Source: Guillardia theta CCMP2712
Lineage: Eukaryota; Protista; Cryptophyta
Reading direction: 5' to 3'
Assembly (NCBI RefSeq): GCF_000315625.1
Contig: NW_005434667.1
Coordinates: 1,107,061 to 1,171,060, forward strand
DNA length: 64,000 nt
The translations under genes and the position numbers were made by a program. A model generated the notes under the pieces. That model did no database searches and had not been told where the DNA came from. It saw only the letters and a list, made by a program, of their open reading frames with translations. Positions 1,398 through 20,700 of the stretch are shown here, one piece after another (position 1 is the stretch's first letter; every line of letters starts with the position of its first letter).

Positions 1398-1749
1398 GAC
1401 TACTGCAAACAGAATGTCAGATTCCTTGTGTACAAGCCAATAACATAGCGAAAGTCAACGGATATGACATCAAGGTTTTTGAAAATTCTCAATCATCCGT
1501 ACAAGAGCGAGCATTCATCCTTTAAATATCCTACAAGGATCCAGCAAAGACTTGTGAGAAGGATACGACTGGAACATGGAAGGGTGGATGTCAGAATTAC
1601 GCTTGGATCCATCACACAGATCGCAAAGATAACACACAAGGAGTGAGAAAGTACACCGCGCAGCGACAGGTCATAATGCTGCATCGCCATCACATCAAAA
1701 TTTTGACTGCGTGTACATCTTGCCTGTTCGCTGCTTTTCTCCCCCTTCG

Positions 1750-2890
1750 GATCGCTTATAAACTGAAAGGTTGTGAGTACCCCTACCTCCTTGGTTTTCA
1801 GACCTACCCGTGCCTTTGTGTATTCATGACCGCCCACCCCCTTCATCAATCAACCACCCACTTCATGTCACTTGAAGTGTACACATACCCGGTATTCAAT
1901 AGTTAATTCTTCAGGTAAAGAACCCGTCCTGAAGAATCTCACCCCTTGTCTGAGCATCACTACCCTTGTATTTGATTCCGATTCACATATGGGCTACCTC
2001 CCACCCACTCCTTGTCCAGGGACCCTCGCTAACACTACCACTACCCTTGCTCTAATATTCAAAATCACCGGTACATATGAAGAGCCAGCTCCAAAGGCCG
2101 CGCCCTTACCATCGCCAACCCCTGACCTGAAACCAACCATTATAATCCACTACCCCCTTCTTTTACTATCCGTCGTCACGCAACAGGAGGGTACAATTAG
2201 GACCCCACCCCTGATATCCCTACACCTCCTGGGCTCTGGTGATTATTATTAATACAACCTACCCTAGTAGTAGTAGTAGTAGAGTCTTGTGGTTCCGATG
2301 GAGCCCCACCGGCTCTTCGACCTACCCACCTCGTAGTTTCAGATACACCCCTACCTACCTTGCTGAATCCACTTGTCCATTGTAAACATTTACACCGGTA
2401 CTGTTCTGTGTACACAAAGTAGGCAATTGAAAGTGACATGGGGGTAGGTCAACTACCGTACCCTCAGCGATTGGGCATGACACCCCTGCTAACCCTGCTG
2501 GTCTTGATCATCTCCCTCATTCTCAAATCATTCCTTCATCCAGTACCTCATCTCCCCTCTGACCACAGTTGTACCCCTACCCTGTTGTACCCCCAGATCA
2601 GAATCAAAGTACCCCTCCAATAGGTGTCATGTGCTCTCGACAGTACCCCCTTCATTATTGCCACCCTAATACATCTTACCCCTACCCCTCTTCCAGCTGT
2701 TATCACCCCAGGCTTTGTCTATTTGAGTACCCTTATTCTCCCTGTATACCCCTGCACCCACTCCCCGATGAACTACTATTGGCCCAACATGCACTTCTAG
2801 GGTCCAGTCTGCACCCCCCACCAGCAGTTTGACCACATTTTCTATGGTAGATATAGGTCAGGGTCATCACCCCCACCTACATAGATAGCG
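1750..2890. repeat. Degenerate TACCC/ACCC-rich low-complexity intergenic tract
   Basis: Many taccc/caccc words, C-rich on the + strand, no credible ORF. Confidence 0.45.
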
Positions 2891-3004
2891 ATCATTGTGG
2901 AGATGCAGGTTGATGCGACCTGAGGAGGAAGGTGAGGAGGAGGAGGAGCAGGAGAGGGTGAGAGAGCTCAGAGACGTTGTCGATGAAATGCTGGTCTGTA
3001 ACAC

Positions 3005-3070
3005 TCAGAGAAAGAAAGCATGAGAAAAGAAAGAAAGCATGAGAAGAAAGCATGAGAGAAAGAAAGCATG
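3005..3070. repeat. Short imperfect tandem repeat (agaaagcatgag) x4
   Basis: Repeated gaaagcatg unit seen directly. Confidence 0.7.
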
Positions 3071-3691
3071 GTTGATGGAGGAGGAGAGGAAAGAAACCTG
3101 ACTTGGCATCTTCGCAAAGTCAGGAGAGCATTAGTTGATTGTATGGAGCTGATTTTGTGGGTGGAAGGAAATGTTCGAGATTGTATTCAAAGTGAAAGAG
3201 AAGTACAGATTTGGTCTTGAAGAATTTTTTCTACAGAAAGGAGCTCAGAAGAAGATCCATAGGTGGGAGAGGTGAAGAGGTTTGTAGTAAGAAGGGTGAG
3301 AAGAAAGGGAGTGAATTGTGAGGTAGGTGTAGATCGAAAGGCATTCGGGTGGATGAACTTCTTTCTCGTGGCCATGAAAGATACGGAGAAGGTTCATGAG
3401 CAAACAAACGAGTCGTATGGCATATTTGATTTCTTTATTAGATTGGTTTAGGATATGGTGCTGGTCGGTTTTTTTGAGGATTTTGATGGAATTGCATGTA
3501 AAGATACATTAGTTTAACGGAAAGACTCGGGGATATAAGCGCATCATGTTCGTACTGATTGCAGCGCATATCTTTTACTAATATCTTTTACTGCCACTTT
3601 GGATGAATCATAATGCTTTCCTTTGATAGTCTGCAGAATCGTCAACATCGTACCAAGAAAAATTATAGGTTCAGGCACATAATAGTTCGAA

Positions 3692-5660
3692 ATGGCTGCC
3701 GAGCGCATCCGAATGCGAATAAATGAATTGTTATCATCTGAAACCAAGGTTTGTGAATCGCTGAATCAACTTATGCAAAAGCTACAGGAAATCGAACAGG
3801 TATGTGTCTTTCACATGTCGGGAAGGGTTTATCTTGTCTGGCAGTGAGTTTTGTCCAGGACAAAGCCTGGAAATTGGGCCCTGAACATGTCAAGTTGATC
3901 ACAAGAACATCTGGATGCTGTGAGCTTTTGATCCAACTGCACGAGACCATTGCAGAAAAAGTTGCGATGTTCGTGGGTCCCTCTCATCTAGCAGGTTTCC
4001 ATGTGATTGGAAATTCCTCTCCCACCTTGACTTGTGAACAAAAGGCGTGTTTGAAGCGAGTGAAAACGAACTCATCACTCATCATTCTGAATTTCAAACT
4101 TTGTCTTCCTGTGTCATGGTCGTCTTGCAGGTGCTCACAATCATTTGCTATGTTTGTCAACCTCACTGCTCATATCTCCCCAGAAAAAGGCTGGAGGTCA
4201 AGTCATAGGTGACAGAGCAGTCGGGACGTCACCTAAGGTATTGAAGTATTTCATATCCATGGAAATGAATTCCCTTCAGATGCAAGATAATCTAGCTTCT
4301 GCTCTCCATTCCCTTCAAGATTTGCTTGTCCGTCCTTCTCAACTTGTGATGAAATATCATGTATTGCATCGTTTGTCTTCAACCATATGCTGAAGTCGAA
4401 CAGTTGTTCCTCGACGAAATGGTCAAAGATGCGGCAGGAAGTCCAGATGAAGAAAACGTCCGTAAATGTCTGAATATTGCCAAACGCCTTACCTCAGAGG
4501 TGACTTGCCAAGGTGTCGCAACTGGCCCCTTATGTCTTGCAGATTAATGAGAGAATCCGTGGCATTCAAAGAAGAGAACGAGTAGTACTGATAGCATCTC
4601 GAGTCAGAGCGGTTCCATATCACTTTTGCCGAATAGCAACGATATGACTGTGTGCATTAAGGTTCCCCCAGAAATCGAAATCGTCAAAGAAGGAAGAGAA
4701 TTTCTTCTGGATGATGGGTATTTCCGAGAGCATGGCAGAGCCGGATATCGCCATCTGTATCTTTTCAACGATGCTGTTCTTGTCTGCAAACCAGGAGAGA
4801 CTGTGATTGGCAAGTTTTTCACAAAGAATGATAGGGTAAAGAGATTTTATCATGTGCGGTGCAAGGCTTACTTGCTTCATGTAGGATCTTAAATTCAAGA
4901 GGTTTATCCCTCTTGCTGCGATCAAACCTTCCGAGCTCCCAGTGGTGAGATCTTAACTGCCACGAGAGACTTGTTCACTTGTCTCCAGGTGCGAGATCCT
5001 GCCGTCTCGGAAGAAGACTCACCCGGCGGGTAAGGGGAGCGTGGCGATGAGCTGATATCTAACAGCATCTTGGCAGTTTGAGCCAGCTTCCCTTTTTCGA
5101 GTTGCGAGACAAGGCGGGGAAGTGTGTGAGTGAAGCTCTGTTCCCTCTGCTGGTCTTGATCGCTTGCCAGGCTTTCCATCATCAAGATCGAGAGAAGCTT
5201 CAGGAGTGGGTGACAGCCATTCGGAATGCGGTTTCGAATTATTGCGTTGATAGCCGACGTATTGATCTTCATCTGCAGATCGATGAGATCACAGTGCGAG
5301 GCTCTCAGAACCCTGTCCCTGCATACAGGTCACAGTGAATATTCTTTCTCCCCATCTTCCCAAACCGCATGCCGCTTAAGGAAAACAACCAGGTTACCCA
5401 ATAGCTCTGAGGACATTCGCCAGCTTTCACAGGATTTGTCGGGATATGTGAGTTCACAAACATCTACTTCGTATGGAAATGACTTGGATCTGTCAGGTGG
5501 TTCTTGGAGACAAAGATGGAGAGTCTGAAGTTTTTGTATTCTGAGAGAGAAAATCCTTCATGTTTCAATATGAAAACACTGTTATTATGGATAGTGACAA
5601 CAAGAATATAAGAAGACAGTGACGGATCATATTTTCTGGACCTACATCCTTCAAAACGTG
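3692..5660 (+). CDS. RhoGEF (DH + PH domains), multi-exon
   Basis: DH start RINELLSSETK, DH core LQDLLVRPSQLVMKY, PH-like RHLYLFNDAVLVCK...EKLQEWVTAIRNA, possible second PH (SGGSWRQRW); both ends approximate. Confidence 0.75.
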
Positions 5661-5672
5661 ACCCTGACCTTT

Positions 5673-6968
5673 CTATCGCATCGTTTGATCAGAAGTGGCC
5701 TTGCAGAAATCCAGAAAGAGTCCAACTTCTTCCTCGTTGACTATCTGTTGTGGGGCCAGTCAGGCCATTGATCTTACAAACAAACGAATGGCATACTTCA
5801 GCGCTTCTACCATCATTCGTTTGCTTGATAGTATTGTTGCATGGTTCTTCTTGCTGTTGTTGCCGTTACATTCACCCTCACTGTCATCAGTTACAGAAGC
5901 AAGAGCTGACCTTGAAACCCTTGTCATCTAGTCCACCGCTCTTCCACTTCGTTCGGCGATATCTCTTACAATGTCTGTGCTGCAAGTTGCAACAATCTGT
6001 GACGCAGCAGCAGATTTTCCGACAGATCGGACAAATCCACTTGGAGCTGTCACAAGATGGAATATCGACATGGGGAAGATGTTTCACAAGACAGTGCTCG
6101 CAATATCTCTGACCACACGACGGTATACAACATCCCACAGTCCAGAACCGTTTGGGCTCGTGACCTGCACACCACCCATCAGTGAAACACATCGTGATAG
6201 CTTGAAGCCATGGACCGCAAAAGTGACAGTTCTTGTTCATCCCATGTGAGAACTCGTTAACCCGATGTTCGTTCACAAGCTTTTCAAACGCCCCAACAAG
6301 ATGACAACTGTCAATGTCTTTGTCGTGCGGATAGTTGGAAACATCTCGGATTTCGGCACCCTGCGGGGTTCATGTCAGTTCAGAAACATTGAGCAACAAC
6401 ACTTCTTCACTAACTTCTTCTTTCACTTCTTGTTTTAGACCCGCAGCCGCTGACAGAACAGGGTCTGCACTTAGAGAACTTGCGCTAATGCCCAACGCAG
6501 ACAAACACTCTTGCTTCATACCCTTTCCAAACTGCTCGTTTATGGATTCTGCCTGTAAACCAATCCAGTATTTGTTCAGTTCACGGATTCAGAGGACAAT
6601 GGGTGACACCTCCTCCTTCAATCTCTTGATTTTCTGCGAGCACTTAATGAGTGCACGGCAAGAGGAAACATCGAACAATCATGCCTGCAGCTTGAGGAGA
6701 TATTTCTGCAAATGTGTGCGGACTTGAGTAGGTGTCCTTGTCTTGATCATCTCTGCTATAGCTCTGTAATTTCTTCCCCCATATTTCTGAACGCCGCGAA
6801 GGAACAGACTGGAACAATAATTGTATCAACAGCAGCCTTCAACTTCCAACACACCTCCACTTACAGATGCTCTTCGTCAGACCAGTATCTCACCGGTTCT
6901 TTACATACAAACTTTCCCTGACGTGCCTTCTGTTTGTCGTTGACTGAGTCTGACGTCGAGATATCCAT
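5673..6968 (-). CDS. Myb-like (SHAQKYF class) DNA-binding protein with C-terminal Cys-rich zinc finger (zf-4CXXC_R1-like), multi-exon
   Basis: Spliced reading WSDEEH|LFLRGVQKYGGRNYRAIAEMIKTRTPTQVRTHLQKYLLKL; C-terminal CHFC...CGQRYCEHCL...WICPICRKICCC. Confidence 0.8.
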
Positions 6969-7703
6969 CTCAAGGCCCAAAATTCTACGCAGTAGAAATC
7001 AACTGAAGAATCTATTGAAATGATTCCCACTTCTTCCTCAACCATCATCGTACTTCCTCACACTGCGATTTTGAAAATGCAGGAGATAAAACCTTCCTAT
7101 CGTCTAACATTATTAAACTTCATCATCTTCTTGCACTCAATCTCTTCTCTGGCAACTTTCAATCAGGATAAGAAGCTGGAGAGTTTTTCTCCACAACATT
7201 ATTGGGCATACATAAGTATTCCAGCTGTGCAAGGGGATCTCTCTGCCCTCATAAGCTCTGTCTGACATCTCTCTTCTCTCCCCTCCTTTCTACTCTTCCA
7301 CTTCGTCGCCATCTCCCGCATGATCCCCTACTGCCATGGCTCTCGTCCCGGCTCTTGTCCCCACCGAACTACCCACCCCTCTATCCCTTCATGTGTGTAC
7401 CAACCCTCACGAGACAACACCCCCCGTTCTCGTAACTCGGACTACCTACCCTCACACCCTACAAAACATGATTGGATCCTATAGTAGCAGGGGTGATGTT
7501 GTACGATCCCACCCTTGTCTGTTAGTTACTACTAGTGGCACCCCCACCCCCTGGTCATTTCGCGCAAGCAAGAAATTCAGTCAGCTCGCAAGAAACTCAA
7601 TTAGCTCACACAAGATTGATTAATTTTAAAAGTCCATTTCCTAGCAGAGTTTGTGAAGTCGCACGGCATGCTGTGAAAGGCTGCACGGCAATGATCCTTG
7701 TCC

Positions 7704-10700
7704 ATGTTGCGAGCTAAGTATCAGATTATACTCATCTTGGTGCTCACCAACCTTTGCAGCTTGCTTGCGGTGGCTGCAAACTGCTCAAATCTCCCCTCAA
7801 ATGCATTCTGGGAAGGAAACCTTTCTGTGTCATCAACGAACTGTGTGTGGTTGTGCTTACCTGGCTACAATGAGATCAACGGAACTTGTCACCCATGCAT
7901 CATTTGTGGGCCATCAAGCTACAGCAACTGTTGGTATCCGACGCAAGATGTGCAGATGGAATCTCCTGTTTCCTTCACAAGTCTGTCGTGTATCAGCACT
8001 TGCGCAAGATTTTCCCTTGTTAGCACTGGCGTCTGGGACAAGCAGGGTGGTTTTGTCTCCTGTCAATGTGCAAACAAACGAGTAGCTTACTGGAGACACA
8101 ATGTGATCTGTGAGAAATTCGGGGACATGAGCAACTCAAACTGTGATCGAGGCGCTACCATAGCTTCAATATCGTATATGACTGCTGAGCGAACGGTGTT
8201 AGATTTGTCTTTTGTCACATTTGCCTCTGCATTCGACGGAAGTATACAACAATGTCTTGACACGTGCACCTCGGACTCGTATTGTCGTTGTCTCAGCATT
8301 CTCTCAGATAAGAAAGGCAGAATGACATGTGTCTTCAGCGATGATTCCTGCCAAGCGAAGAGTGCATCTGCGAGGTTTTGGGATCAACAACCTTCAAAGA
8401 GGAACCGAACCTCAGTTCTTTACATTAAGAATGCAAGTGCTTGTGTGCATTGTGCCAATGGGATAGTTACCTATGACGATCTTGAATATTGCCAGTGCCC
8501 AGCAGGAAGTTTTCTCAGTCCTGCGATCGAAACAGATCATGATTGTTTACAGGAAAGTTTGTTAGTATTTCAGAGTGTTGTTCCTCAAGATATCAACGAG
8601 AGCTCAAGTCTTAGGCTCTGCGCCTCTACAGCAAGAATTGCTCAGCAAGAAGCTTTCTGCTATAGCCCCTCTACGAAGATGTGCTACTCACGATTGGACG
8701 TTTCGAGCGTCTGCTCAGTGGTCCCTCGAGGCAAGCAACAATCTTTCAAGAGATTCTCCATGCACCGCTCTCAGCTTTCCTGGTATGAGGCAGAAGCGTT
8801 TTGCAACAAGCACGGCGGCCATCTTTCGTCTGTCGAAGATCAGCAGGAGCTGGTGCAGCTTGAAGGATTAATGCAAGACGTTGAGAATGTTTGGATTGGA
8901 TTGAACATGGACTCAAACAAAAATGTCAGTGTTCAATCTGATATTCTTTGGTCAGATGGCTCAATTCTCAGAAACAATAGCATACTCGATGACAAAACTT
9001 TTCGATCTGGCTGTCTTGCAATGCGATCGTCGAAACCACAAGCTTTCAAGACTTTTGATTGTAATCGCAGTCTTTCATTCTCATGCTCTTTCAAAGCCAC
9101 AGATGTTGCGAAGATTGCAAGCGATCTTAAGTGTTACATTACTGAATCTGTTTGTCAAAAATGCACGAACATGGATGGGAGATTTGGACCTTATTTTGTT
9201 TATGGCTTTGGAGATCCTAAGAAGAAATCATGTGCAGTGAAATGTGAAGCGGGCTTAGAGGATTCCTACACTTTGTACGATTGTCCTGGAAGAACCTTGA
9301 CATCTGTTGCCTGCGAAAAAGCAAAAGCTTGCAGGATATTCATGGAAAGCGGCGATGGATTGTGTGACATTGAGTATCTGCAATGTGGGCAACAGAAGCT
9401 TTTTCGATTCTGGGAATTGATTGCACGATTCGGGCTGCCGTCCATGTTGACTATCATGATTTTGAGTATTTCCATGTGTTGCTTCCCTTCCTTGTGGATC
9501 TCTCGTGACCAGAGAAGGAGATGTTTATCTTGTGGCACCTCACTTTGCTTCACATGCTACAAGGAGGCAACAGCAGAGAGAAGTAGAGAAAACTCAGAGA
9601 GAACTCTGGCTAACGAGATGGAAGACGTCTCACTTAGGGATGCAATGATGCTGAAAGCTCTCTCGCCTGCGAGATCGACGCTTGCTTGCTCGAGATGTCA
9701 TCAGAAGAGGCCCCATCCTCGGGAACCTGTTTGTGGTCGATATGGAAGACGAGTACAAAACGACTTAGACGTTGATCAAAAGTTTGCCCCGCTCCTCGGA
9801 ATATCTATCAGATCCTTTTTTTTCGTCATGAGGACAATGTTTCTGTTCAGGTACAATAGAGGATTACAATGCTGCTTGATCGTACTCTTGTGTGGACTGG
9901 CAATGGGCTCGGTAGCAATTTTGGAATTTATTCGAAATTTACCGCTCTATACCGATGAAATTAGTAGTCTTGTCTTCATGGCAATTGGTTTGCCTTTTTT
10001 TTCGAGCCTTGCCTTTGGTTGCTTTCTGATGATGGTGTTGGAGTTAGAGAAATCAGTTTGTTGTTTTTGTTCCAAAGATTTTGCCTGTCAGGGCTGCTGG
10101 GCAAGACACTTTTCGAATATGCAAGCAAAGTTTGGCAAAGACAAGTTTCTTGTCAAGAATATCATTCCGCGAGGTAAAATTCCTGGGCGTTTCATCTACA
10201 AGAGAGATGGCAAGTTCTGCAACAAGGTTGTAGTGAATCTTCCAAATACAGAAAGAATCGTTCTCCGAGTGCATCATGTGGATGAACAAGTAATTCCCCC
10301 ACCGATTTACGTTCTCCCATCGGGAGTTACCTTTTCCTGGCTAGATAACAACACTTATACTGGAGATCTGACGTTCGACACCTCACGCATGAAGGGTTGG
10401 AAGAAACCGTCGACCATCACTCTGATTATTGCAGCAATAAACCCATTCGGCATTTTCACTCAAAAGGTAGAGGTGTATATCAATGTGCAACCCTGTGCTC
10501 CACTGGAACTGAAATATGAAAGCTACAATGGCTACTTGCTGATGCATGAACCTCTTCATCTCAAACAATGTGATATGACTGGCAACTGGCGATGCTCATG
10601 GTGCCTAGAGCTGGCGTCAGAGCAGATGGTCTGCACGACTTGCATCCGCAAAGGTGGATATTCCCCTCTTGTGTGTCTGCAATGCTATCACGAGTACGAG

Positions 10701-13700
10701 TTTGGGAAGATCATACATCACCCTGTCAGACATCAATTTGTGAAACGAGTGCCAGCACAGCAGGGTTCTTACGTGTGGTATAAGAACTATCCTAGTTGGC
10801 AGGACCCTATAAGGCGAACACTTGCGAGACTTGGGCGCTACACCAATGAAGCAGGGGATGAAATTATGAAGATCAACGAGATCTTAACAATCATAATTAG
10901 TCACGAGGGTAAAACAATCACTGGTTTCTTTAAAAAAGGTATTTGCTATGTAGTCCTTCCCTTCTTAGTTGCAATATTGGCTCTCAATTGCTACATCACT
11001 TTTCAGCTAACTCAAGGAATCATTATCATGGCATCCTTGTTCTCCTGCCTCTTCTGCCTTTTTCATCTCTCTTTACTCAGACGCAGGATGACAATCACGA
11101 GGTTTAGCTACAAGACCTCAAAAGTCCTTCATACTCATTTTTTTCAAACGGAGTTTCAGGTGCTGTACGAGTTACCGGACATTGACTTTCTAGTCCTCGG
11201 AAAAGATTTCATTACCACTCATACGCATGTGGAGGCTCCGGCAAGACTAGCAACTCAGGGTCATCCACCACCTCTGTTCCGAGCTGAAAGGACCCTACCA
11301 AAAGGCCTCTTCCTTGACGCGAACAACGGCACTTTGTATGGTTATGCGCTCGAAGATGGCGATTTTGTGATACGAATCCAAGCATATAATGATGTAGGCT
11401 CCTGTTCATGCACTTTCAAGTTGAGAATTGTGAAGTCCAATCCTCCTCCCAGGAAGATTAAGAATTTTTCTGGTCTTGAATCAGAACCACCAAGTTTGAT
11501 GCTCCGTGAAGCATTTGAGCAGCCTGAGAGGATAGAAGTGAAGAAAATATGGAGGAATAGAGGTCTGTTTAGCTATAAGCAATTCGACCTATCTGCCCAT
11601 GCTGGCGAGAATGTAATCATCAAGCACAAAACGTTTTATGCAACGTTGCAAGAAGCCATCGGATCTGTAAAATCACCAGGATCGTTTCAGCTGCTCCATA
11701 CGTCCCCGCAACTAGTCGAGGTCGATGAAGACACAGGACATGTTCATGGGTCGTTGACAGCCCACAAGATTTTGACCTGTTTTCCTGCAAGGTGTGAAGC
11801 GATCTTTCTCTCCAGACGAGGAAGGAACTATATACACAAACATGTTGTCCTTTCTATCTCGGAAGTCACGCTGGATCAGTCTCCACCAATCGGCTGCATC
11901 AGGTATGCTCGAATCGGCAACGCAAACTACAGAAAGACTTTGAGGTTGCCAGACTTTCCAGAAGTGCTGGAGGTCGAACCTCAGACATTCTCAGCCACGT
12001 TCGAGGATGAAGTATGTATCGCCCCATGCCTAGTGTCCTTGCCGACAGTGTTGGAACCTCTGACAACAATCGTTGAAAGGAATCCCGGCTAACTCTTGTT
12101 GTCGTGCAAGTTTCAGAAACTGGTGCAAGGACAGGACGCTTGCGTGTTGCCGACGAGCAACAAAGAAGATCAGATGAAGCCATGCTGGAGCTTGAGGTTA
12201 GCTGGGATGCAGCTGGCGAGATGTGGACGAAGACCTCGACAATCAGTGACTTGTACTTGTACTTGACAAGCGTCTTGCCTGGATGGCGACTGAAGCCAAT
12301 CCAAACTCTCTGCTCCGGGACAATGGTGCAACATGCAAACCCTCTTCCCCTTGGAACGAAGCTCAGTACCAACGGAGTCATCCACGGGAGAGCGCGGCTT
12401 CCTCATCCTCCGGTCTTGTATGAGATTGTACACAAGGCAGATCAGTCCGAAGAGAGCAAGGTCGTCTCTATCCAAGTGTCTTCGTCTGCAGCCTTGAAGC
12501 GCCGAGCATTCATGACATGCGTCAGGTATTCTCATTCTATCTTGAAAGCATTGACCGAACGCCTGTACGTCTGGAGGAGACTAGAGCTGCTATGGATTCA
12601 AAGGTCAGCTACAAGCTACACAGATCTTGACTTGGATGATGTAATCCGATACTGTTCATTGCCCAAAGCTCTGAATAAAGCTGACCGAAGACTGGACGGG
12701 TCTCACGCAATAGGAATTGCGATCCCTGGTTACCGAGTACAAGGAGTGATCGGAAAAGGAGGACAAGGAACAGTGTATCTTTGTCAAGAAGTTGAGTCAC
12801 AATCAGTCTGTGCTATCAAAGTTTGCAATAGACCAGATGAGCGGGAATATCAGAATTTGAAGTCTCTACAGCAGCTTCAGCATCCCAACATTGTGAGATT
12901 GTTTGATTGCATTCTTGAGCCTTTCGCTATTGTCATGGAGTACGTGCATGGACAATCTTTGAAGGAGGTTATGCAGACCTCAGAAGATGGTGAGGGCAGA
13001 AAACTGGATCTGGAGTTGATCAAACTCATCGGCTCTCAGATGCTCGATGCCTTGTCTGCATTACACAGAATGGCAATCACTCATCGAGACCTCAAACCTT
13101 CCAACATCTTATGCACGTTCTCGCATAATCAAACAATCGAGAAGGTCACGTTGATCGACTTCGGCGCTTCCAGACATGACAATTTCGATGTGACGATGAC
13201 CAATACAGGCCAGTTCGTTGGGACATGGCAGTACTTCAGTCCTGAGCAGTGCAGGGGTGATGCTCAACTTGATGCGAGAGTGGATGTCTGGTCAGCTGGG
13301 GTCGTTATCTATGAAATGGCTGCTGGGAAAAATCCATTTTTCTCTCTGAATGTGCTTGAGCTGTTCAACGCAGTACGAAGAAAGCGGTTTGTTGTGATTG
13401 TCACCTGTGATGTGGCGATGAATCTGTTCCTAAAGACAGCTCTGAAGAAAGATCCTCAAGATCGATTCGTGGACGCGGATGAGATGCTCCAGGCGTTCAA
13501 ATCCGTCTTTAATGATCCCAAGGCAGCGATCAGGCAATTGTCTGCCAGGACTAGCACTTTTGATGCCAGCAAAGGAATGCAACTCGCTGAGTCTGCCAGA
13601 AATCTCTCGTCAGGGAACTGGGGAGTGCTCGCGTTTTTTGTGAAGAAGCCTGTCGATGTCGAAGTTCTTGCGGTCAAGATCGAGGACCAATTGAACAAGA

Positions 13701-14368
13701 AAGAAGAAGAGGACAAGAAAAGTATTCTATCTTCAGTGTTGATGGATGAAATAGAAAATATCGACCCATATGAAGAAGCAAAGATCATGCAGGAAATATC
13801 CCTTGATGCTTTGTATCATATCCGCATAATCCCACAGCCGACTTTTGAAAACTTTGTTCGTTCTATGGAAATCTGCGAGAAGTTGAACATAAAGATTGTT
13901 CATCTATCAGGACATGGTGATCGCGACAAAGGATTTTGGTGGCTCAGAGAAAACAAGAACAAAGAGATTAAAGAATATGACTACAAACGACCAGAAGAAG
14001 TTGCAGATGTAATCGCTTTACAGGTTGGTTGGGGGCGATCACACTCTTTGGTTGAATGTGTCATTCTCAACGCTTGTCAGTCATACAACATGGGAAAGCT
14101 TCTCGTTGATCGAGGAATCAAAAACGTCGTTTGCTGGAGAGGGACAGTCTGCGACGAGACAGCCATCAGTTTTTCCAAATACTTCTATGAGACACTCAAC
14201 GAATTGCAAGTTGGAAGAAGAGAGATCGATTATCCCCGAGTGTTCGAGCGAGCTTGTTTAAAATTCTCAAACACTTCATCCAATATGATTTCCTCGAGAG
14301 GTAAAGCCAAGACAGTCAGGCAGGATCAGGTTGTCCTTATCAGCACAGGCAAGTGTCTCTGTCATTGA
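7704..14368 (+). CDS. ~2200-aa multi-pass receptor: signal peptide, Cys-rich/C-type lectin ectodomain, TM helices, putative Ig (He_PIG-like) repeats, ZZ-like zinc finger, Ser/Thr kinase, CHAT caspase-like protease
   Basis: ORFs 7698-12092 and 12104-14368 join in frame via intron 12012-12079 (gtatgt...ctgac...aag). CTLD SWYEAEAFC..HLSSV..VWIGL..WSDGS; kinase GKGGQG/AIK/HRDLKPSN/DFG/SPE/DVWS; CHAT HLSGHG and ILNACQS. Confidence 0.85.
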
Positions 14369-14700: not shown

Positions 14701-17700
14701 TCATCCCCTCCAAGATCTCCGAGTGTGCCTGCCGTATGTCTCAGACGGTTCAACGCATCGAGCATGCAGACCCGCCCGACCTCTGGCCGGACTCCTGCCA
14801 CCGCCACCGTCAGCATACAAACACACAAGGCTGGAGCACTGACCGAGCTCTAGCTCCCTCCAAACGCGCTGAGCTGCTATCTCGACGTTGAAGTTACCGC
14901 ACGTCATGAGCGAGCCAGCTTCTTCTTTCAACAAGTCTCGGAGCTCGGCGCATGATCGCACCAGGGGCATGCAAACCGTTGACGTCAGCCGATGGGCCTC
15001 AACGCTGCGCCAGAATAGGATGAAGCAGTGGATGAGCTGGCGCCACAGGTAAAGTCCGTGACTTTCTATAGAAAACTGTTGCATGTAGCACGAGAAAGCC
15101 TCGAGCACCTCCTGCAAACTTCTGACGGTTGACTCTGTCCAGGTGACGTCATAGTCTGACAAGGTCGAGCATATAGACAAGGATTGGCATATGATCTTGT
15201 GCTGTATGCTTTCCTCAAGGTCACTATTGATTACAGTGCTGAGCAACTTCAGAAACTCGACGATCGCCAGTTCGTCCTGCTGAACTAAGTAATGGATGGC
15301 ATTGGTGGATAGCCAGAAGAAGGAGAAGTATGCTCCGAGGTCAACCAAGTCCCGCATCACATGGACTGTGCTGTTTCGAATGTTTCTGCAGTCATTCGGT
15401 TGCAGAGGAGAGGTACGAGCAAGGACGCAGGAGAGGACGAGGTCCAAGCATCTTGCTCGAGCGTATGGAAGAGGTTCCGCGAATCCTCGTGAGCGAACAT
15501 CGGTGACTGCATCTACTACCTCATCCCGATACCCCTCCAATTCACGGTGGAAAGTCAAAATGCTCGAAAGAAGCTCCTCCTCCTCATCCTCGCTATCTTC
15601 CTCCTCGCTATCCTCTTCTTCGCTAATTTCCTCCTCCTCCTCCTCCTCCTCCTCCTCCTCCTCCTCCTCCTCCTCCTCCTCCTCCTCCTCCCTATCTCCC
15701 TCCCAGCTCTCCTCTTTGTTGAAGTTCTCCTCTTCTCGGTTCCATTCCTCCGACTTGTCGTTCTCCGTGATCTCTTCAGAGAAGTAGGGTGACATCTCTT
15801 CTTTCCAGCAGTCACCCGCATAATTCAAGGAGCAGTCGTTCTTGGACCAAGGGCTGTACATCTCATCATATCTGGACCAAGGGCTGTACATCTCATGATA
15901 CATCACGTCATACATCACGTGAGATCGTCGTGCAGTTAACTCTGAGAGCTTTGCTTCACTTCTCGAGAGGACAGCGTTTGTCTGTATGAGGACCTTCTGC
16001 TGGAAAAGCACTGCATTCCTGGCGTTCACGACCCGTCCATACCGCCTCATCCTGTACCCGTCGTTCTTCCTGTCCTCACAGCCGAACGGGCAAGGCTTGT
16101 TTGCGAAGGAGTCCGTGGTGGCAATCTCCACTTCTTTCAGCCCGACGAAATTTCCCTCGGCATCCTCGGAGTAGACCTTGTGCAGCTCCATGTGCGCGTC
16201 CGCCGAGCTGATCTGCAGGACGTGCTGCTGGCAGGGGAACAAGATGAGGGGGTCCGCCTCGAGGTTCGCGTCCTTCAAGCTGGAGGAGGTGAAGAGGTCA
16301 ACCTGCAGCCTCCCGACGTCTCCAGTCTGGTCGCACAGGCGGCAGAAGCTTTGGTAGGGCTCGCAGGGCTCCCCGCACACGCTGGGGCAGGGGTGACCGC
16401 AGCCAAGGTTCTTGTCGCACCTCTTGTTGCAAGGCAGACGATCGCAGGGAGCGAAGCAGAGCAGGGAGCATCGCTTCACGTGCTTGCACGCCCAGTCACA
16501 GGGCTCCATGCACGGCTTGCACATGACCCCGCACGGCTTGCGGCACTTGGAGTGCGCGCATGCGAGAGAGCACTCCTCCTCGCACTTCGCCTCTCCGCAT
16601 CTCGAGCCGTAGAAGGCATGGCAAGGAGCACCGCACACGTGGCCGCAGAGGTTGGACAGCCTCTGCTCGCATCGCACCTCACACTTGTCTGCGTGCTTTG
16701 GGATGATATCCTCATACGTCGAGCTCAGAAAGTTCAGCCCTGCTGCTTCGCTGCCCGACTGCAGGCAGGAGCCGCATGAGGCGGGGCAGGTGTGACCGCA
16801 CTTCAAGAGACCGCTGCATGGAACTGGGCACTTCACCCGCCCCTCCTTGTAGTCCTCTGCTAGCTTGCAGGGCACCTGCACTTGATGCCCGCACACGGGC
16901 ATGCTCACTGTGACCTCCTCCTTGCAGTACTGCCGCGTCGGATTGGCCGTCTGCCAGCACCGGATGGAGTTGGAGTGACCGCAATGCAGCAACACGTCCT
17001 TTATCACCTCCGAGCACTTGCCGCAATCTTGGAAGCAGAGCTTCTTGCAGCTGTGCTGGAACTGACACCCTCGTGGCCTCCTCGAGCAAGGCTGGCGGCA
17101 CTGAAACCCTTGATGTCCGCCAGGATGGCACGACCGAGGGCACACGTGCCCACAGTCCAGCAGAGCTTCGCAGAGCCGCGAGCAGCCGCCATCTCGTGCG
17201 AGCTGGAGGAAGTCCTGGGGCTGCTTGCAGAGCCGCATGTCTTGCGGGTGTTTCTGACAGACAATAGGAATCCCGTCTCCCACGCAACCTCTGCTTGACA
17301 AGAGCTCTATCACCCTAGTCCACATGCGATCATCGTGCATGAGTGTGTGTTTGTTGCCGATCAGGTACATGCCGTGCTTGGCGCGGGACAGGAGCACGTT
17401 GACTCGATTCTCGACCTTCATGAAGCCTGAACCTCTCTTGGGGTTAGAGCGAACCAGGCTCAAGATCATGATGTCGTTCTCCTCTCCCTGATAGTTGTCA
17501 ATGGTTGCCACCCGTATGCCGCCTCCTGAGACATCCGCCCCAGTACCTTGGGGCCCTCCCTCCTCCTGCTCGGACCCTTGCATCATCAGCTCTGCCTCTT
17601 GGCTATCCTCCTCTCCGAGGAACGCCGCGAAGGAGGACTTAACAAGTTCCTTCTTGATCAGCACGCTCTGACCCAAGTATCCCGTGAGCACGGTGATGCG

Positions 17701-20700
17701 GTCTGCTGTGAATCCCTGCGCCAACAGGTAGCGGATGAGCGCAACGACGCAAGCGACTTCGTAAGAGTTGGTCTTGGAGCCCTCATGCGTCTGGTATCTC
17801 ATCGACGAGTCTTTTCTCCCGTCCTCAGGCACTCGGTGGTTCCAGAAGAACACAGGCGACGTCATGCCGCTCACAGGCGGGTAGTGCAGGACCTTGTCGG
17901 CGTCAAGGAGCTCAGGGTAGATAGTCTGCCGGATCAGGTCGGAGATTTCAGGACGCATGCGGTACTGCCGTCGGAGCACACATGTCACGGCCTCGCGATC
18001 TTCGACGAGCCGCTCGAAGAGCGATCGGTCTATGTCATATCCTTCCTCGGACTGCACCGTCAGCTTGTGGCAGTTCACTTTAGGACGCAGCTGCTTGTGG
18101 TCCCCGATGGAGATGGCATGCTGGATGGAGCTGCCGATGAGCGAGAGCGTCTGGGCCTCGAGGATCTCCGCTGCCTCCTGCCGTGGGGCAAGTCAGTCAA
18201 ACTCAAAGAAACACAAGCATCTCCTGCCTCGATGAGGACAACTTCACTCTGCAGCCCGTTGATGAGATCTTTGAACATGTTGAGCCCTGTCACTGTGCAA
18301 CCGAGGATGGTGCAGTTCTGCTGAAGGTAACTGACTTGTTGTGCTCGTTGCAACTGCTGCTTCTGTTCGTAAAAGTTGTGTAGACGAGAATACAGAGAGA
18401 GCAGCGTTTGATGCTGCGTTGCTCTGAATTTATCCTGGATGAGTCTCGCAATTAGCTGTCTCGATCGCAGTGAAAGAGCCCAGATGTCATGAATCTCCGG
18501 GATTTCATCCATGTCGCCAATTGCAATGTTCACCGGCTTCTCTGGCAGGTATAGAATCTGCTGAAGCATAGTCTCTGTCTCTTTGTCTGAATCCAATTCT
18601 TGCCTGATGGTCTTCAGCGCGTTTCCACTTGTTCCGTCCTTATCGTTTCTGTATTTCAACCGATCGAACCGATTTGAGAATTTGCTTGGTACCTGTTTGC
18701 TTCTTCGGGGGTAAGTATAAGGCTTGATCCATAACTCAAAGATGTCATTTCTATCTGTAAAGACAAATTCCGAATCGTACAAGAATATTTCTGCGTTGAC
18801 CAAGTCTTGCCAGATGGTTGGAAAATCATCTTCAAGGAAATTTTTGATTAGCTTCCAACTTGGTTTTGGATTACTCTTGATGACATTGGTATGTTTTTCA
18901 ATCTTCTTCTCCAAGTGATTAATTCCTTTCATGATGCGGCAGTACTCAGACCTAGTGGCCCATCGCGAGTGCTCCAGTATCCTTTCTCTGAGGTCGTTCA
19001 GCGAGTAGCCAGACAGTCTCGCTGATCGCGTCCGCGTCCCGAGGCGCACGAGGTCGAGGCTGGGGAGCTCATCCAGGAGGTGCTCGAGGAACTGATCTAG
19101 CGCGTGGTTGGTGTAGCAGATGCACAGCAGAGGGTGTCCGGGGCCTATCACTTGGTTGGCAATCAGCAGCTTCACCATACCGATGCCGAGGAACGTTTTC
19201 CCGGTTCCTGCCAGAGTCAGGACAGCTCAAGTCAGGACAGCTGCCTCATGCGCTGCTCGACTCACCTGGCGGCCCTTGTGTGATGGCCAAGGATCGAGTG
19301 AGGGAATGCACGAGCGCGCTCGCTTGCTCTGCATCCAAGTAGCTCACGTCCTGCAGCGTCGCGATCACCTCGTTTTTGATCTCCTCGTCCTTCAGATGCT
19401 CCGAGCTCACTGCTCCAAGCAAGGCCTCAGCTTCATCTCTACATGGGCCGTCAAGGTCAGGCTTGAACAGACACTCAAAGTTCCAGACTACCCCCTCGAG
19501 GTTCCTGGGGAACTCAGACTGGAGCGGTTGAGAGGTCAAGGCAAGCTGAGCCAGCACAGGCGAGATGTTATCATATCGGATTGCTTGCAAAGTCTTGAGA
19601 ACGTTGTAAAAGCTAAAAAACCCGCACCTAGGATCGATGATGCAATATTTCTCTTCACTACGAGTGAATTCCCGGACATTGTGTTGGAGCTCTTGAAGTT
19701 TGAGCTCTATTTCCATTCGGTTGCCCTCAGCCTTCTTGTTATGCTTGGGAGTTGCGCAAGTGACAGTTCCTAGCCCTATGCATTCACTGAAGTCTTCAGT
19801 AAGCAGCTTGCTCACACGCACAAGAAGTACAACATCATCCTTCTGAAGAGCTTGTATCTTTCCAGATTTCCATTCCTTCTCCATCGCGTCTTGTGTTGCC
19901 TTCTTAAATGATGACAGCTGATCCATCTCATATCGATGAACCAATCCAGAAAATCTGTTGAAGGCAATGTCCAGGAAGCGAACATTTCTGAAAATGAAGA
20001 CAGAATGGAAAGTTGAGCTTCCTTCCACGACTATCTTGTGCTTGTCGCTTCCGATGTCTTTGTTGAGCAGCTCAGCAATTCGTGGTGTGTGCTTGGACAT
20101 GTGCCGCACTAGTTCGGTCAGGTTCGCGATGGAGTCATGCCGAAACAAGCGAAAGTGAACGTCGACCAGTCTCTGGATAGAGTCATGAGGAAGGTGATGC
20201 GGAGCCTCTGCCTTGTTCTGCGGCAGGCATGGCAGCTGGTCTGCCAGCAGCTCCTGGGGAGTTGGGACGATGCTAATGTTGGCAATGTCCTCAAAGTCGT
20301 TGTCATGCCTCCTTCCTGTCTCATTGAGCTCTCCTGGCAACCGGAATGGAAGCAGACGAGAAGAGCGCGTGCTTGATGGTTTGCTCGCTCTCACGGGCAG
20401 CGATTCAGAAAAACCATGCCTCTGCATCACTGCTCTCAACGCGTTCAACATTATCGACACTTCATGCTGCCTTGAATTAACGGTCAGTTGCATAAGTCTG
20501 TGCTCGAGTTTCTCTACAAGATGGAGATACTTTTTGTGTCTTGGTTGTCCGGGAAGGATCACAAGCAGCTTCCCTGCAAAGAAACCAACTGCTTGCAGTT
20601 CCTCCATGTCCAGTCGCGACCAGATACACTGGCTTTCATCTGAGATCAGGTCCAGCAAGCTATCGATGAACTGAGCGTTGACATTGAGGATGGTTGTGAG

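Follow-up and report, generated by a model that had tools for sequence, protein, structure and literature searches.

We analysed a 64,000-nucleotide stretch of the Guillardia theta CCMP2712 genome (hereafter the window) carrying at positions 7704-14368, on the plus strand, a receptor-like gene with a C-type lectin-like domain (CTLD), a Ser/Thr kinase and a CHAT domain. This gene probably belongs to a three-member, essentially intron-less family of multi-pass receptor-like proteins, in which the window copy is broken by the deletion of a single base at about 12089/12090 and for whose kinase and CHAT domains a joint mechanism may be proposed. As sequenced, the window copy can yield no more than a membrane protein of 1,462 amino acids (aa) that lacks both kinase and CHAT, which makes it a truncated allele or a pseudogene of very recent origin. 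A preliminary description of the locus, made from the sequence, had joined its two open reading frames (ORFs) across a phase-0 intron at 12012-12079 into a fusion protein of 2,198 aa; neither this intron nor the spliced product withstood the analysis described below.

The receptor-like family and its frame-broken copy

Two long ORFs are found on the plus strand of the locus (7698..12092 and 12104..14368). The two reading frames and the segments around their junction are as follows:

7704-12092 (plus strand): frame-A ORF, from ATG to TAA, 1,462 aa, with signal peptide, ectodomain, five transmembrane (TM) segments, zinc-finger-like loops and a He_PIG Ig-like region
12012-12079 (plus strand): the intron proposed earlier, actually frame-A coding sequence, homologous to coding sequence of the paralogs and retained in RNA-like contigs
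12077-12092 (plus strand): frame break; frame B is open from 12077, after the TGA at 12074-12076, and frame A stops at 12090-12092
12077-14368 (plus strand): frame-B open frame, 763 codons and stop, with Ig-like linker, kinase and CHAT

Owing to the frame break, the frame-A ORF terminates prematurely, and frame B has no in-frame connection to the ORF upstream of it.

A search of the genome (87 Mb in 669 contigs, with the window on contig C7) with the C-terminal domain revealed two close paralogs, both in very long open frames. The copy on contig C37 (L006, G000:C37:51500-61499, ORF 1486..8253 on the minus strand) comprises 2,255 uninterrupted codons including an ATG and a signal peptide. The copy on contig C186 (L007, G000:C186:43000-52999) is open over 2,157 codons. 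In each of the two, Pfam detects Lectin_C, He_PIG, Pkinase and CHAT in a single frame, and the genome contains no more than three copies of the ectodomain. The preliminary description was thus right to treat lectin-like ectodomain, TM segments, kinase and CHAT as one gene lineage, all of them being present in the single C37 ORF. The fusion architecture is real at the level of the family, as represented by the C37 copy, whereas this window copy is frame-broken.

Judged from its sequence, the C37 copy is the sole unambiguously complete member of the family. At the 5' end of the C186 ORF (2400-2560) there is no in-frame ATG or signal peptide, and a nearby ATG (MGKLKLVGLCCS) lies in another frame. 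This copy may have an upstream 5' exon or intron, or it may have a second frame problem. The simple ORF translations of the window, C37 and C186 copies had no exact match in the protein collection.

The segment 12012-12079 aligns base for base and codon for codon with coding DNA of both paralogs, which have no intron at this position. Its frame-A translation (VCIAPCLVSLP...) is identical to the C186 copy over 11 residues and is conserved as coding sequence in the C37 copy, too. If instead the spliced product is aligned with the paralogs, a gap of 23 residues appears exactly at the junction. Relative to the C186 copy, the window copy lacks one base at about 12089/12090, within a glycine codon, and this is the sole gap in that part of the DNA alignment. 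The missing base explains why frame A stops at 12090-12092 and why the downstream frame is offset.

Splicing of a 68-nucleotide GT-AG intron to a functional protein of 2,198 aa, possibly as an "intronization" by which the frameshift would be repaired with the loss of 23 residues, would be compatible with the GTATGT...AG boundaries, which do exist, with the restoration of the frame upon removal of 12012-12079, and with the fully intact downstream ORF. However, both paralogs conserve the stretch as coding sequence, in the protein as well as in the DNA alignment, and RNA-like contigs of two sequencing runs cross the donor site unspliced and contain no joint. On these grounds 12012-12079 is not an intron, and we consider splicing to a functional fusion protein very improbable.

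The frame break itself was followed in several sequencing runs. A contig of run X1, which stems from a separate study of 2014, covers 9995-13860 at a word depth of 29, and a contig of the DNA run X2 (word depth 74, possibly the source data) covers 8700-13860; both have 0 differences and 0 gaps compared with the window. Because X1 and X2 agree with the window without gaps, the missing base is real in this strain and not an assembly error. An error of assembly or sequencing in an intact gene of about 2,220 aa in one ORF might be suspected from the position of the break within a short C/G run and from the perfect preservation of the downstream frame, which shows no acceleration. Although X2 is possibly the source data, X1 comes from a separate study and has no gap at the site either. 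This explanation is therefore very unlikely. Run X1 also contains all sampled words of the C37 copy.

We took runs X1 and X6 to be RNA by guess, as their coverage ends at 14345-14348 while the DNA run X2 continues, and as depth differs between adjacent contigs. Further grounds in the case of X1 are a contig start near the ATG (at about 7674, some 30 nucleotides upstream of it) and a total of 44 Mb in contigs, compared with the 87-Mb genome. A contig of X6 (11785-12054) crosses the proposed donor site. In none of the runs was a splice joint reported in contigs or reads at the locus, so that, as far as the data go, the spliced reads joining the two ORFs that the earlier gene model calls for were not found. 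Taking X1 and X6 as RNA, the dominant transcript is one unspliced low-level RNA over both ORFs. The run that is certainly RNA (X16, raw reads) yielded only 10 reads, distributed over both ORFs, which are too few to add anything to the question of splicing; this low yield indicates that expression is low.

Two further observations concern these contigs. The RNA-like contigs reach 14345 in one run and 14348 in the other, some 20 nucleotides short of the stop codon at 14366-14368, which may be due to low coverage, polyadenylation or a small terminal intron. Furthermore, 32 bases within the CHAT coding sequence (13831-13862) show roughly double the word depth of the flanking sequence, in DNA as well as RNA-like runs, and the contigs are interrupted there. 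Another locus probably contains an exact repeat of this stretch.

In a three-way comparison, the window lineage carries 200 unique substitutions vs 252 in the C186 copy overall, and 72 vs 100 downstream of the break. This lack of extra divergence, together with the 763 downstream codons that are open and have all catalytic motifs intact, argues for a recent break. Possibly the break is very recent and even strain-specific, or the downstream part is still used somehow. A metagenome scan for an ortholog detected no homolog spanning the break.

Such use might consist in a bypass or exploitation of the break, either by a ribosomal -1 shift close to the frame-A stop, from which the full-length protein would result, or by translation of the kinase-CHAT part on its own (first ATG at 12182). 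The latter would then be a soluble partner of the truncated receptor in a split version made of two proteins. The one continuous transcript over both ORFs and the conservation of the downstream ORF would suit both variants. However, 12072-12092 contains no slippery heptamer of the type X XXY YYZ, for which reason programmed -1 frameshifting was rejected, and nothing points to an internal start. Reinitiation after an ORF of 1,462 codons is very unlikely in eukaryotic translation. Taken together, we regard a bypass of the break as very improbable.

Several points weigh against an unspliced family whose window copy has recently lost its frame. The RNA nature of X1 and X6 is only guessed, contigs drop rare variants so that a minor spliced isoform could escape them, and none of the 10 reads of the true RNA run X16 lies at the junction. 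All runs are probably from one strain; they exclude an assembly error, but not a mutation specific to this culture. A frame of 763 codons with every catalytic motif intact could mean that the downstream part is still made. With regard to the multi-pass receptor character, the TM topology is based on a hydropathy scan alone, and protease activity, kinase activity, ligand and substrate are all putative.

Domain architecture of the receptor-like protein

The domain inventory given in the preliminary description (signal peptide, Cys-rich ectodomain, C-type lectin domain, TM segments, kinase and CHAT) was recovered by Pfam, motif reading and hydropathy at the same coordinates:

7704-7781 (plus strand): signal-peptide-like N-terminus, hydrophobic core at aa 8-26 in a Kyte-Doolittle scan
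7782-8771 (plus strand): Cys-rich N-terminal ectodomain, no Pfam match, homologous to the ectodomain of the metagenomic protein P0001
8772-9092 (plus strand): CTLD, Pfam PF00059 Lectin_C, aa 357-463, E 4.2e-10
9426-9503 (plus strand): TM segment 1, about aa 575-600 by hydropathy, conserved in both paralogs
9522-9701 (plus strand): loop 1, predicted cytosolic, with conserved CxxC...CxxC zinc-ribbon-like motifs
9876-10040 (plus strand): TM segments 2 and 3, a hairpin, aa 725-743 and 761-779 by hydropathy
10041-10940 (plus strand): loop 2, predicted cytosolic, with a CCxC...CxxC motif, an Ig-like (He_PIG-like) stretch and a ZZ-type zinc-finger-like motif at 10593-10733
10941-11081 (plus strand): TM segments 4 and 5, a hairpin, aa 1080-1098 and about 1105-1126 by hydropathy
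11292-11402 (plus strand): He_PIG putative Ig domain, exceeding the Pfam cut-off in the paralogs but not in the window copy
12731-13492 (plus strand): Ser/Thr protein kinase, Pfam PF00069 Pkinase, E 1e-47
13595-14365 (plus strand): CHAT domain (caspase-fold, clan CD-like), with His 13913-13915 (HLSGHG) and Cys 14075-14077 (LNACQS)

The whole ectodomain of about 550 aa contains 42 Cys and 9 N-x-S/T sequons. In a sub-region scan against Pfam (E <= 5), neither the N-terminal ectodomain nor the linker in front of the kinase gave a match. The Atlas feature search assigned PAN/EGF clusters to the N-terminal ectodomain with a score of 0.82 and He_PIG-like features to the pre-kinase linker with a score below 0.9, both of which are weak leads. 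In the alignment of the three paralogs, the CTLD retains the structural Cys/WIGL/WSDG scaffold. None of the three contains the EPN/QPD...WND motif for binding of Ca2+ and sugar, and the long-loop region is short. The domain may thus be named lectin-like, as it has the signature of the fold, but the absence of the EPN/QPD...WND site does not justify the term glycan sensor that had been applied to it.

Besides the signal-like segment, the Kyte-Doolittle scan yielded five hydrophobic segments, and their positions are conserved among the paralogs. The resulting topology is a crude prediction, placing the ectodomain of about 550 aa outside and both long loops as well as the C-terminal 1,090 residues inside. 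Lectin-like domain and kinase/CHAT would thereby lie on opposite sides of the membrane, as the preliminary description had supposed. Both loops have conserved motifs that fit the predicted inside position, CxxC/zinc-ribbon-like ones in loop 1 and a ZZ-finger-like one in loop 2. For loop 1, the matches to DZR_2, B-box and IBR were all below threshold in the sub-region scan; the motifs of loop 2 were read by eye, and no above-threshold Pfam match was obtained for it.

The catalytic motifs of the kinase are complete, comprising GKGGQG (G-loop), CAIK, HRDLKPSN, DFG and SPE, in agreement with the strong Pfam match and with the earlier assignment. Among solved structures, a PDB search placed bacterial PknB-type kinases closest, narrowly ahead of calcium-dependent protein kinases.

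The CHAT assignment was confirmed, with the catalytic residues at exactly the positions given earlier. The Pfam score for PF12770 CHAT is 25.2 bits in the window copy (cut-off 24), while the paralogs score 27-45 bits. Neither His 13913 nor Cys 14075 varies among the 4 CHAT copies of the genome, and both are at least 90% conserved in 55 relatives. In a search of 1.84 billion proteins, a profile built from the four genome copies retrieved 3,931 representatives at E <= 1e-3, 47 of them at E <= 1e-30. A profile of the 55 sequences matches the SAVED-CHAT structure 8tl0 at E 4e-20, with the LHxxGHG and VVLNAC motifs in alignment. An AlphaFold2 model of the domain computed from the 55-sequence alignment reached a predicted local distance difference test (pLDDT) value of 86.9 and a predicted template modelling (pTM) score of 0.87; it replaced an earlier model from a 4-sequence alignment with a pLDDT of 60. 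Foldseek, run with the newer model, returned 8tl0 first (E 2e-10), followed by caspase-3/8/9/11, C11 protease, separase and MALT1. By both profile and modelled fold, the C-terminal domain is a CHAT domain of the caspase fold and a putative protease with an intact His/Cys dyad. A word-index protein search found no match at E <= 1e-10 for the CHAT part of the 762-aa piece and none for the N-terminal 1,436 aa, but this search covered limited length windows and carries little weight.

The gene is flanked by genes for an ankyrin protein and for an AAA_12 helicase, the latter at 14701-18078 on the minus strand. The receptor gene (7704-14368) is richer in AT than its paralogs and this neighbour, with a GC content of 45.5% vs 49-51% in the paralogs. 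GC at third codon positions amounts to 0.47-0.50 in the receptor gene, 0.53-0.57 in the paralogs and 0.72 in the helicase gene. Rfam gave no match in the window.

Relatives and comparable systems

The same CHAT subfamily occurs in 37 long representatives, which carry a kinase in 11, COR-A in 9, He_PIG in 4 and TIR in 3 cases; EAD10 or VMAP-M1 is carried by single members. Kinase-CHAT is accordingly a recurrent module. Such kinase-CHAT, Roc/COR-CHAT and TIR-CHAT proteins come from metagenomes and filamentous cyanobacteria, and the CHAT domain often stands directly 3' of a Ser/Thr kinase or a ROCO switch. P0001 from an ENA metagenome (1,809 aa in one ORF) has, like the G. theta family, the Cys-rich ectodomain module as well as He_PIG, kinase and CHAT, with 33% identity over 588 aa. 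Another ENA metagenome contig (L058, 4,572 bases) carries an ortholog of the C186 copy with 93.7% DNA identity. At about 2590-2720 of this contig, the frame changes between kinase and CHAT near a G run, and the gene caller split the gene in two; this may be a real break or an assembly error.

Two further G. theta loci carry CHAT-related sequence. The ORF 2432..7072 (plus strand) of L008 (G000:C19:298000-307999) encodes 1,546 aa with He_PIG and the same CHAT subfamily. It corresponds to GUITHDRAFT_136222 (XP_005836017.1, annotated as CHAT domain-containing protein), having the same length and falling in the 90%-identity cluster of that protein. Unlike the receptor family, it has no kinase and no lectin-like ectodomain. 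The ORF 3622..9978 (minus strand) of L009 (G000:C23:170000-179999) encodes an LRRK-like ROCO protein of 2,118 aa with the order LRR-Roc-COR-kinase and a weak CHAT-like tail in its C-terminal region (E 1e-19 to the family profile), i.e. a ROCO-kinase-CHAT combination in the G. theta genome.

Relatives in bacterial genomes share only the catalytic core of CHAT, at 28-33% identity, and are found mostly in filamentous cyanobacteria. Taken together, the PknB-like kinase matches, the CHAT relatives in bacteria and the absence of introns give a hint, at sequence level, of a bacterial origin of the kinase-CHAT module. A recent bacterial transfer of the whole gene was rejected, as bacterial genomes hold distant relatives of the CHAT core only and the ectodomain is eukaryote-like in its Cys-rich character.

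By profile and by fold, the closest solved relative is the SAVED-CHAT protein of type III CRISPR (8tl0). Common to both are the His of GHG, the Cys of NAC and the position of the protease at the output end of a sensor. SAVED-CHAT differs in being bacterial and soluble and in sensing cyclic oligonucleotides by SAVED; kinase, membrane part and lectin-like domain are all absent from it, and identity is about 17%. The gene does not resemble Craspase TPR-CHAT (Csx29) or gasdermin-linked CHAT: Pfam found no TPR, there is no gasdermin neighbour, and the gene is eukaryotic and nuclear.

Plant lectin receptor kinases and animal C-type lectin receptors are organised along the same lines as the G. theta family, with a lectin-type domain outside the cell and a kinase output in the cytosol. 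These receptors are single-pass proteins without a protease domain and use RLK/Pelle kinases (plants) or recruit Syk (animals). The G. theta family, by contrast, has five predicted TM segments, a PknB-like kinase and a CHAT domain. MALT1, which was among the Foldseek matches, has an Ig-like domain in front of its caspase-fold protease, as is the case here, and in caspase-8 with RIPK1 a kinase and a caspase-fold protease cooperate in death and immune signalling. In these animal systems, however, kinase and protease are separate polypeptides joined by death-fold adaptors. A Pfam scan of the window gene products detected no death-fold domain.

Among described proteins, the nearest analogues are those of bacterial conflict systems, which join CHAT, TIR and kinase with sensor domains (PMC8195603, PMC10907252). 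In targets of bacterial diversity-generating retroelements (DGRs), C-type-lectin folds occur together with CHAT, TIR or kinase domains (PMC10907252). In the DGR-type proteins, which are soluble or of STAND type, the lectin fold is the hypervariable C-terminal sensor, whereas here it would be N-terminal and extracellular in a five-TM eukaryotic protein. Full-text literature searches, including searches on Guillardia CHAT, found no description of this lectin-like/kinase/CHAT receptor architecture, in line with the preliminary description, which knew of none.

Proposed mechanism and significance

Read from the N-terminus, the family members would consist of a signal peptide followed by a Cys-rich ectodomain that includes a compact CTLD, and then of five TM segments, He_PIG repeats, a PknB-like kinase and CHAT. 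In the intact members, binding of a ligand or clustering of the ectodomain may activate the cytosolic kinase. The kinase would then license the adjacent CHAT protease by phosphorylation and/or by induced proximity, as in caspases and SAVED-CHAT filaments, and the protease could cleave cytosolic substrates or the receptor itself.

By analogy, the family may have an immune or cell-death function. A more specific proposal is that the intact members, with the C37 copy as best candidate, act as death or immune receptors, i.e. as single-chain transmembrane sensors in which an extracellular PAN/CTLD-type module is coupled to a kinase-gated caspase-fold protease. Such a receptor would have been built from a kinase-CHAT module like those of bacterial conflict systems, and the window copy, which is transcribed but ends before the kinase, could serve as a truncated ligand-binding decoy. 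In this full form the proposal is rather unlikely. There is a somewhat better, though still less than even, chance that CHAT is no death or immune effector at all, but is involved in self-processing of the receptor or in ordinary signalling, e.g. cell-cell or mating recognition, sensing of prey or bacteria, or developmental switching; the name immune receptor would then be mistaken. A CTLD without sugar-binding motif, the occurrence of three copies only instead of a large diversified repertoire, and the finding that neither the gene nor its neighbours include death-fold, NACHT or gasdermin partners would all suit such a role. On the other hand, relatives carry this CHAT subfamily in fusion with TIR, Roc-COR, EAD10 and VMAP-M1, which are domains of bacterial conflict systems (PMC8195603, PMC10907252).

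For practical purposes, the intron-containing gene model has to be corrected and the window copy treated as frame-broken, so that the C37 paralog is the copy suited to functional work. The molecular basis of regulated cell death and of innate recognition is poorly understood in unicellular algae. A recognition domain, a kinase and a caspase-fold protease in one chain would, if true, provide a directly testable entry point and would link eukaryotic receptor signalling to the kinase-, ROCO- and TIR-CHAT proteins of multicellular bacteria.

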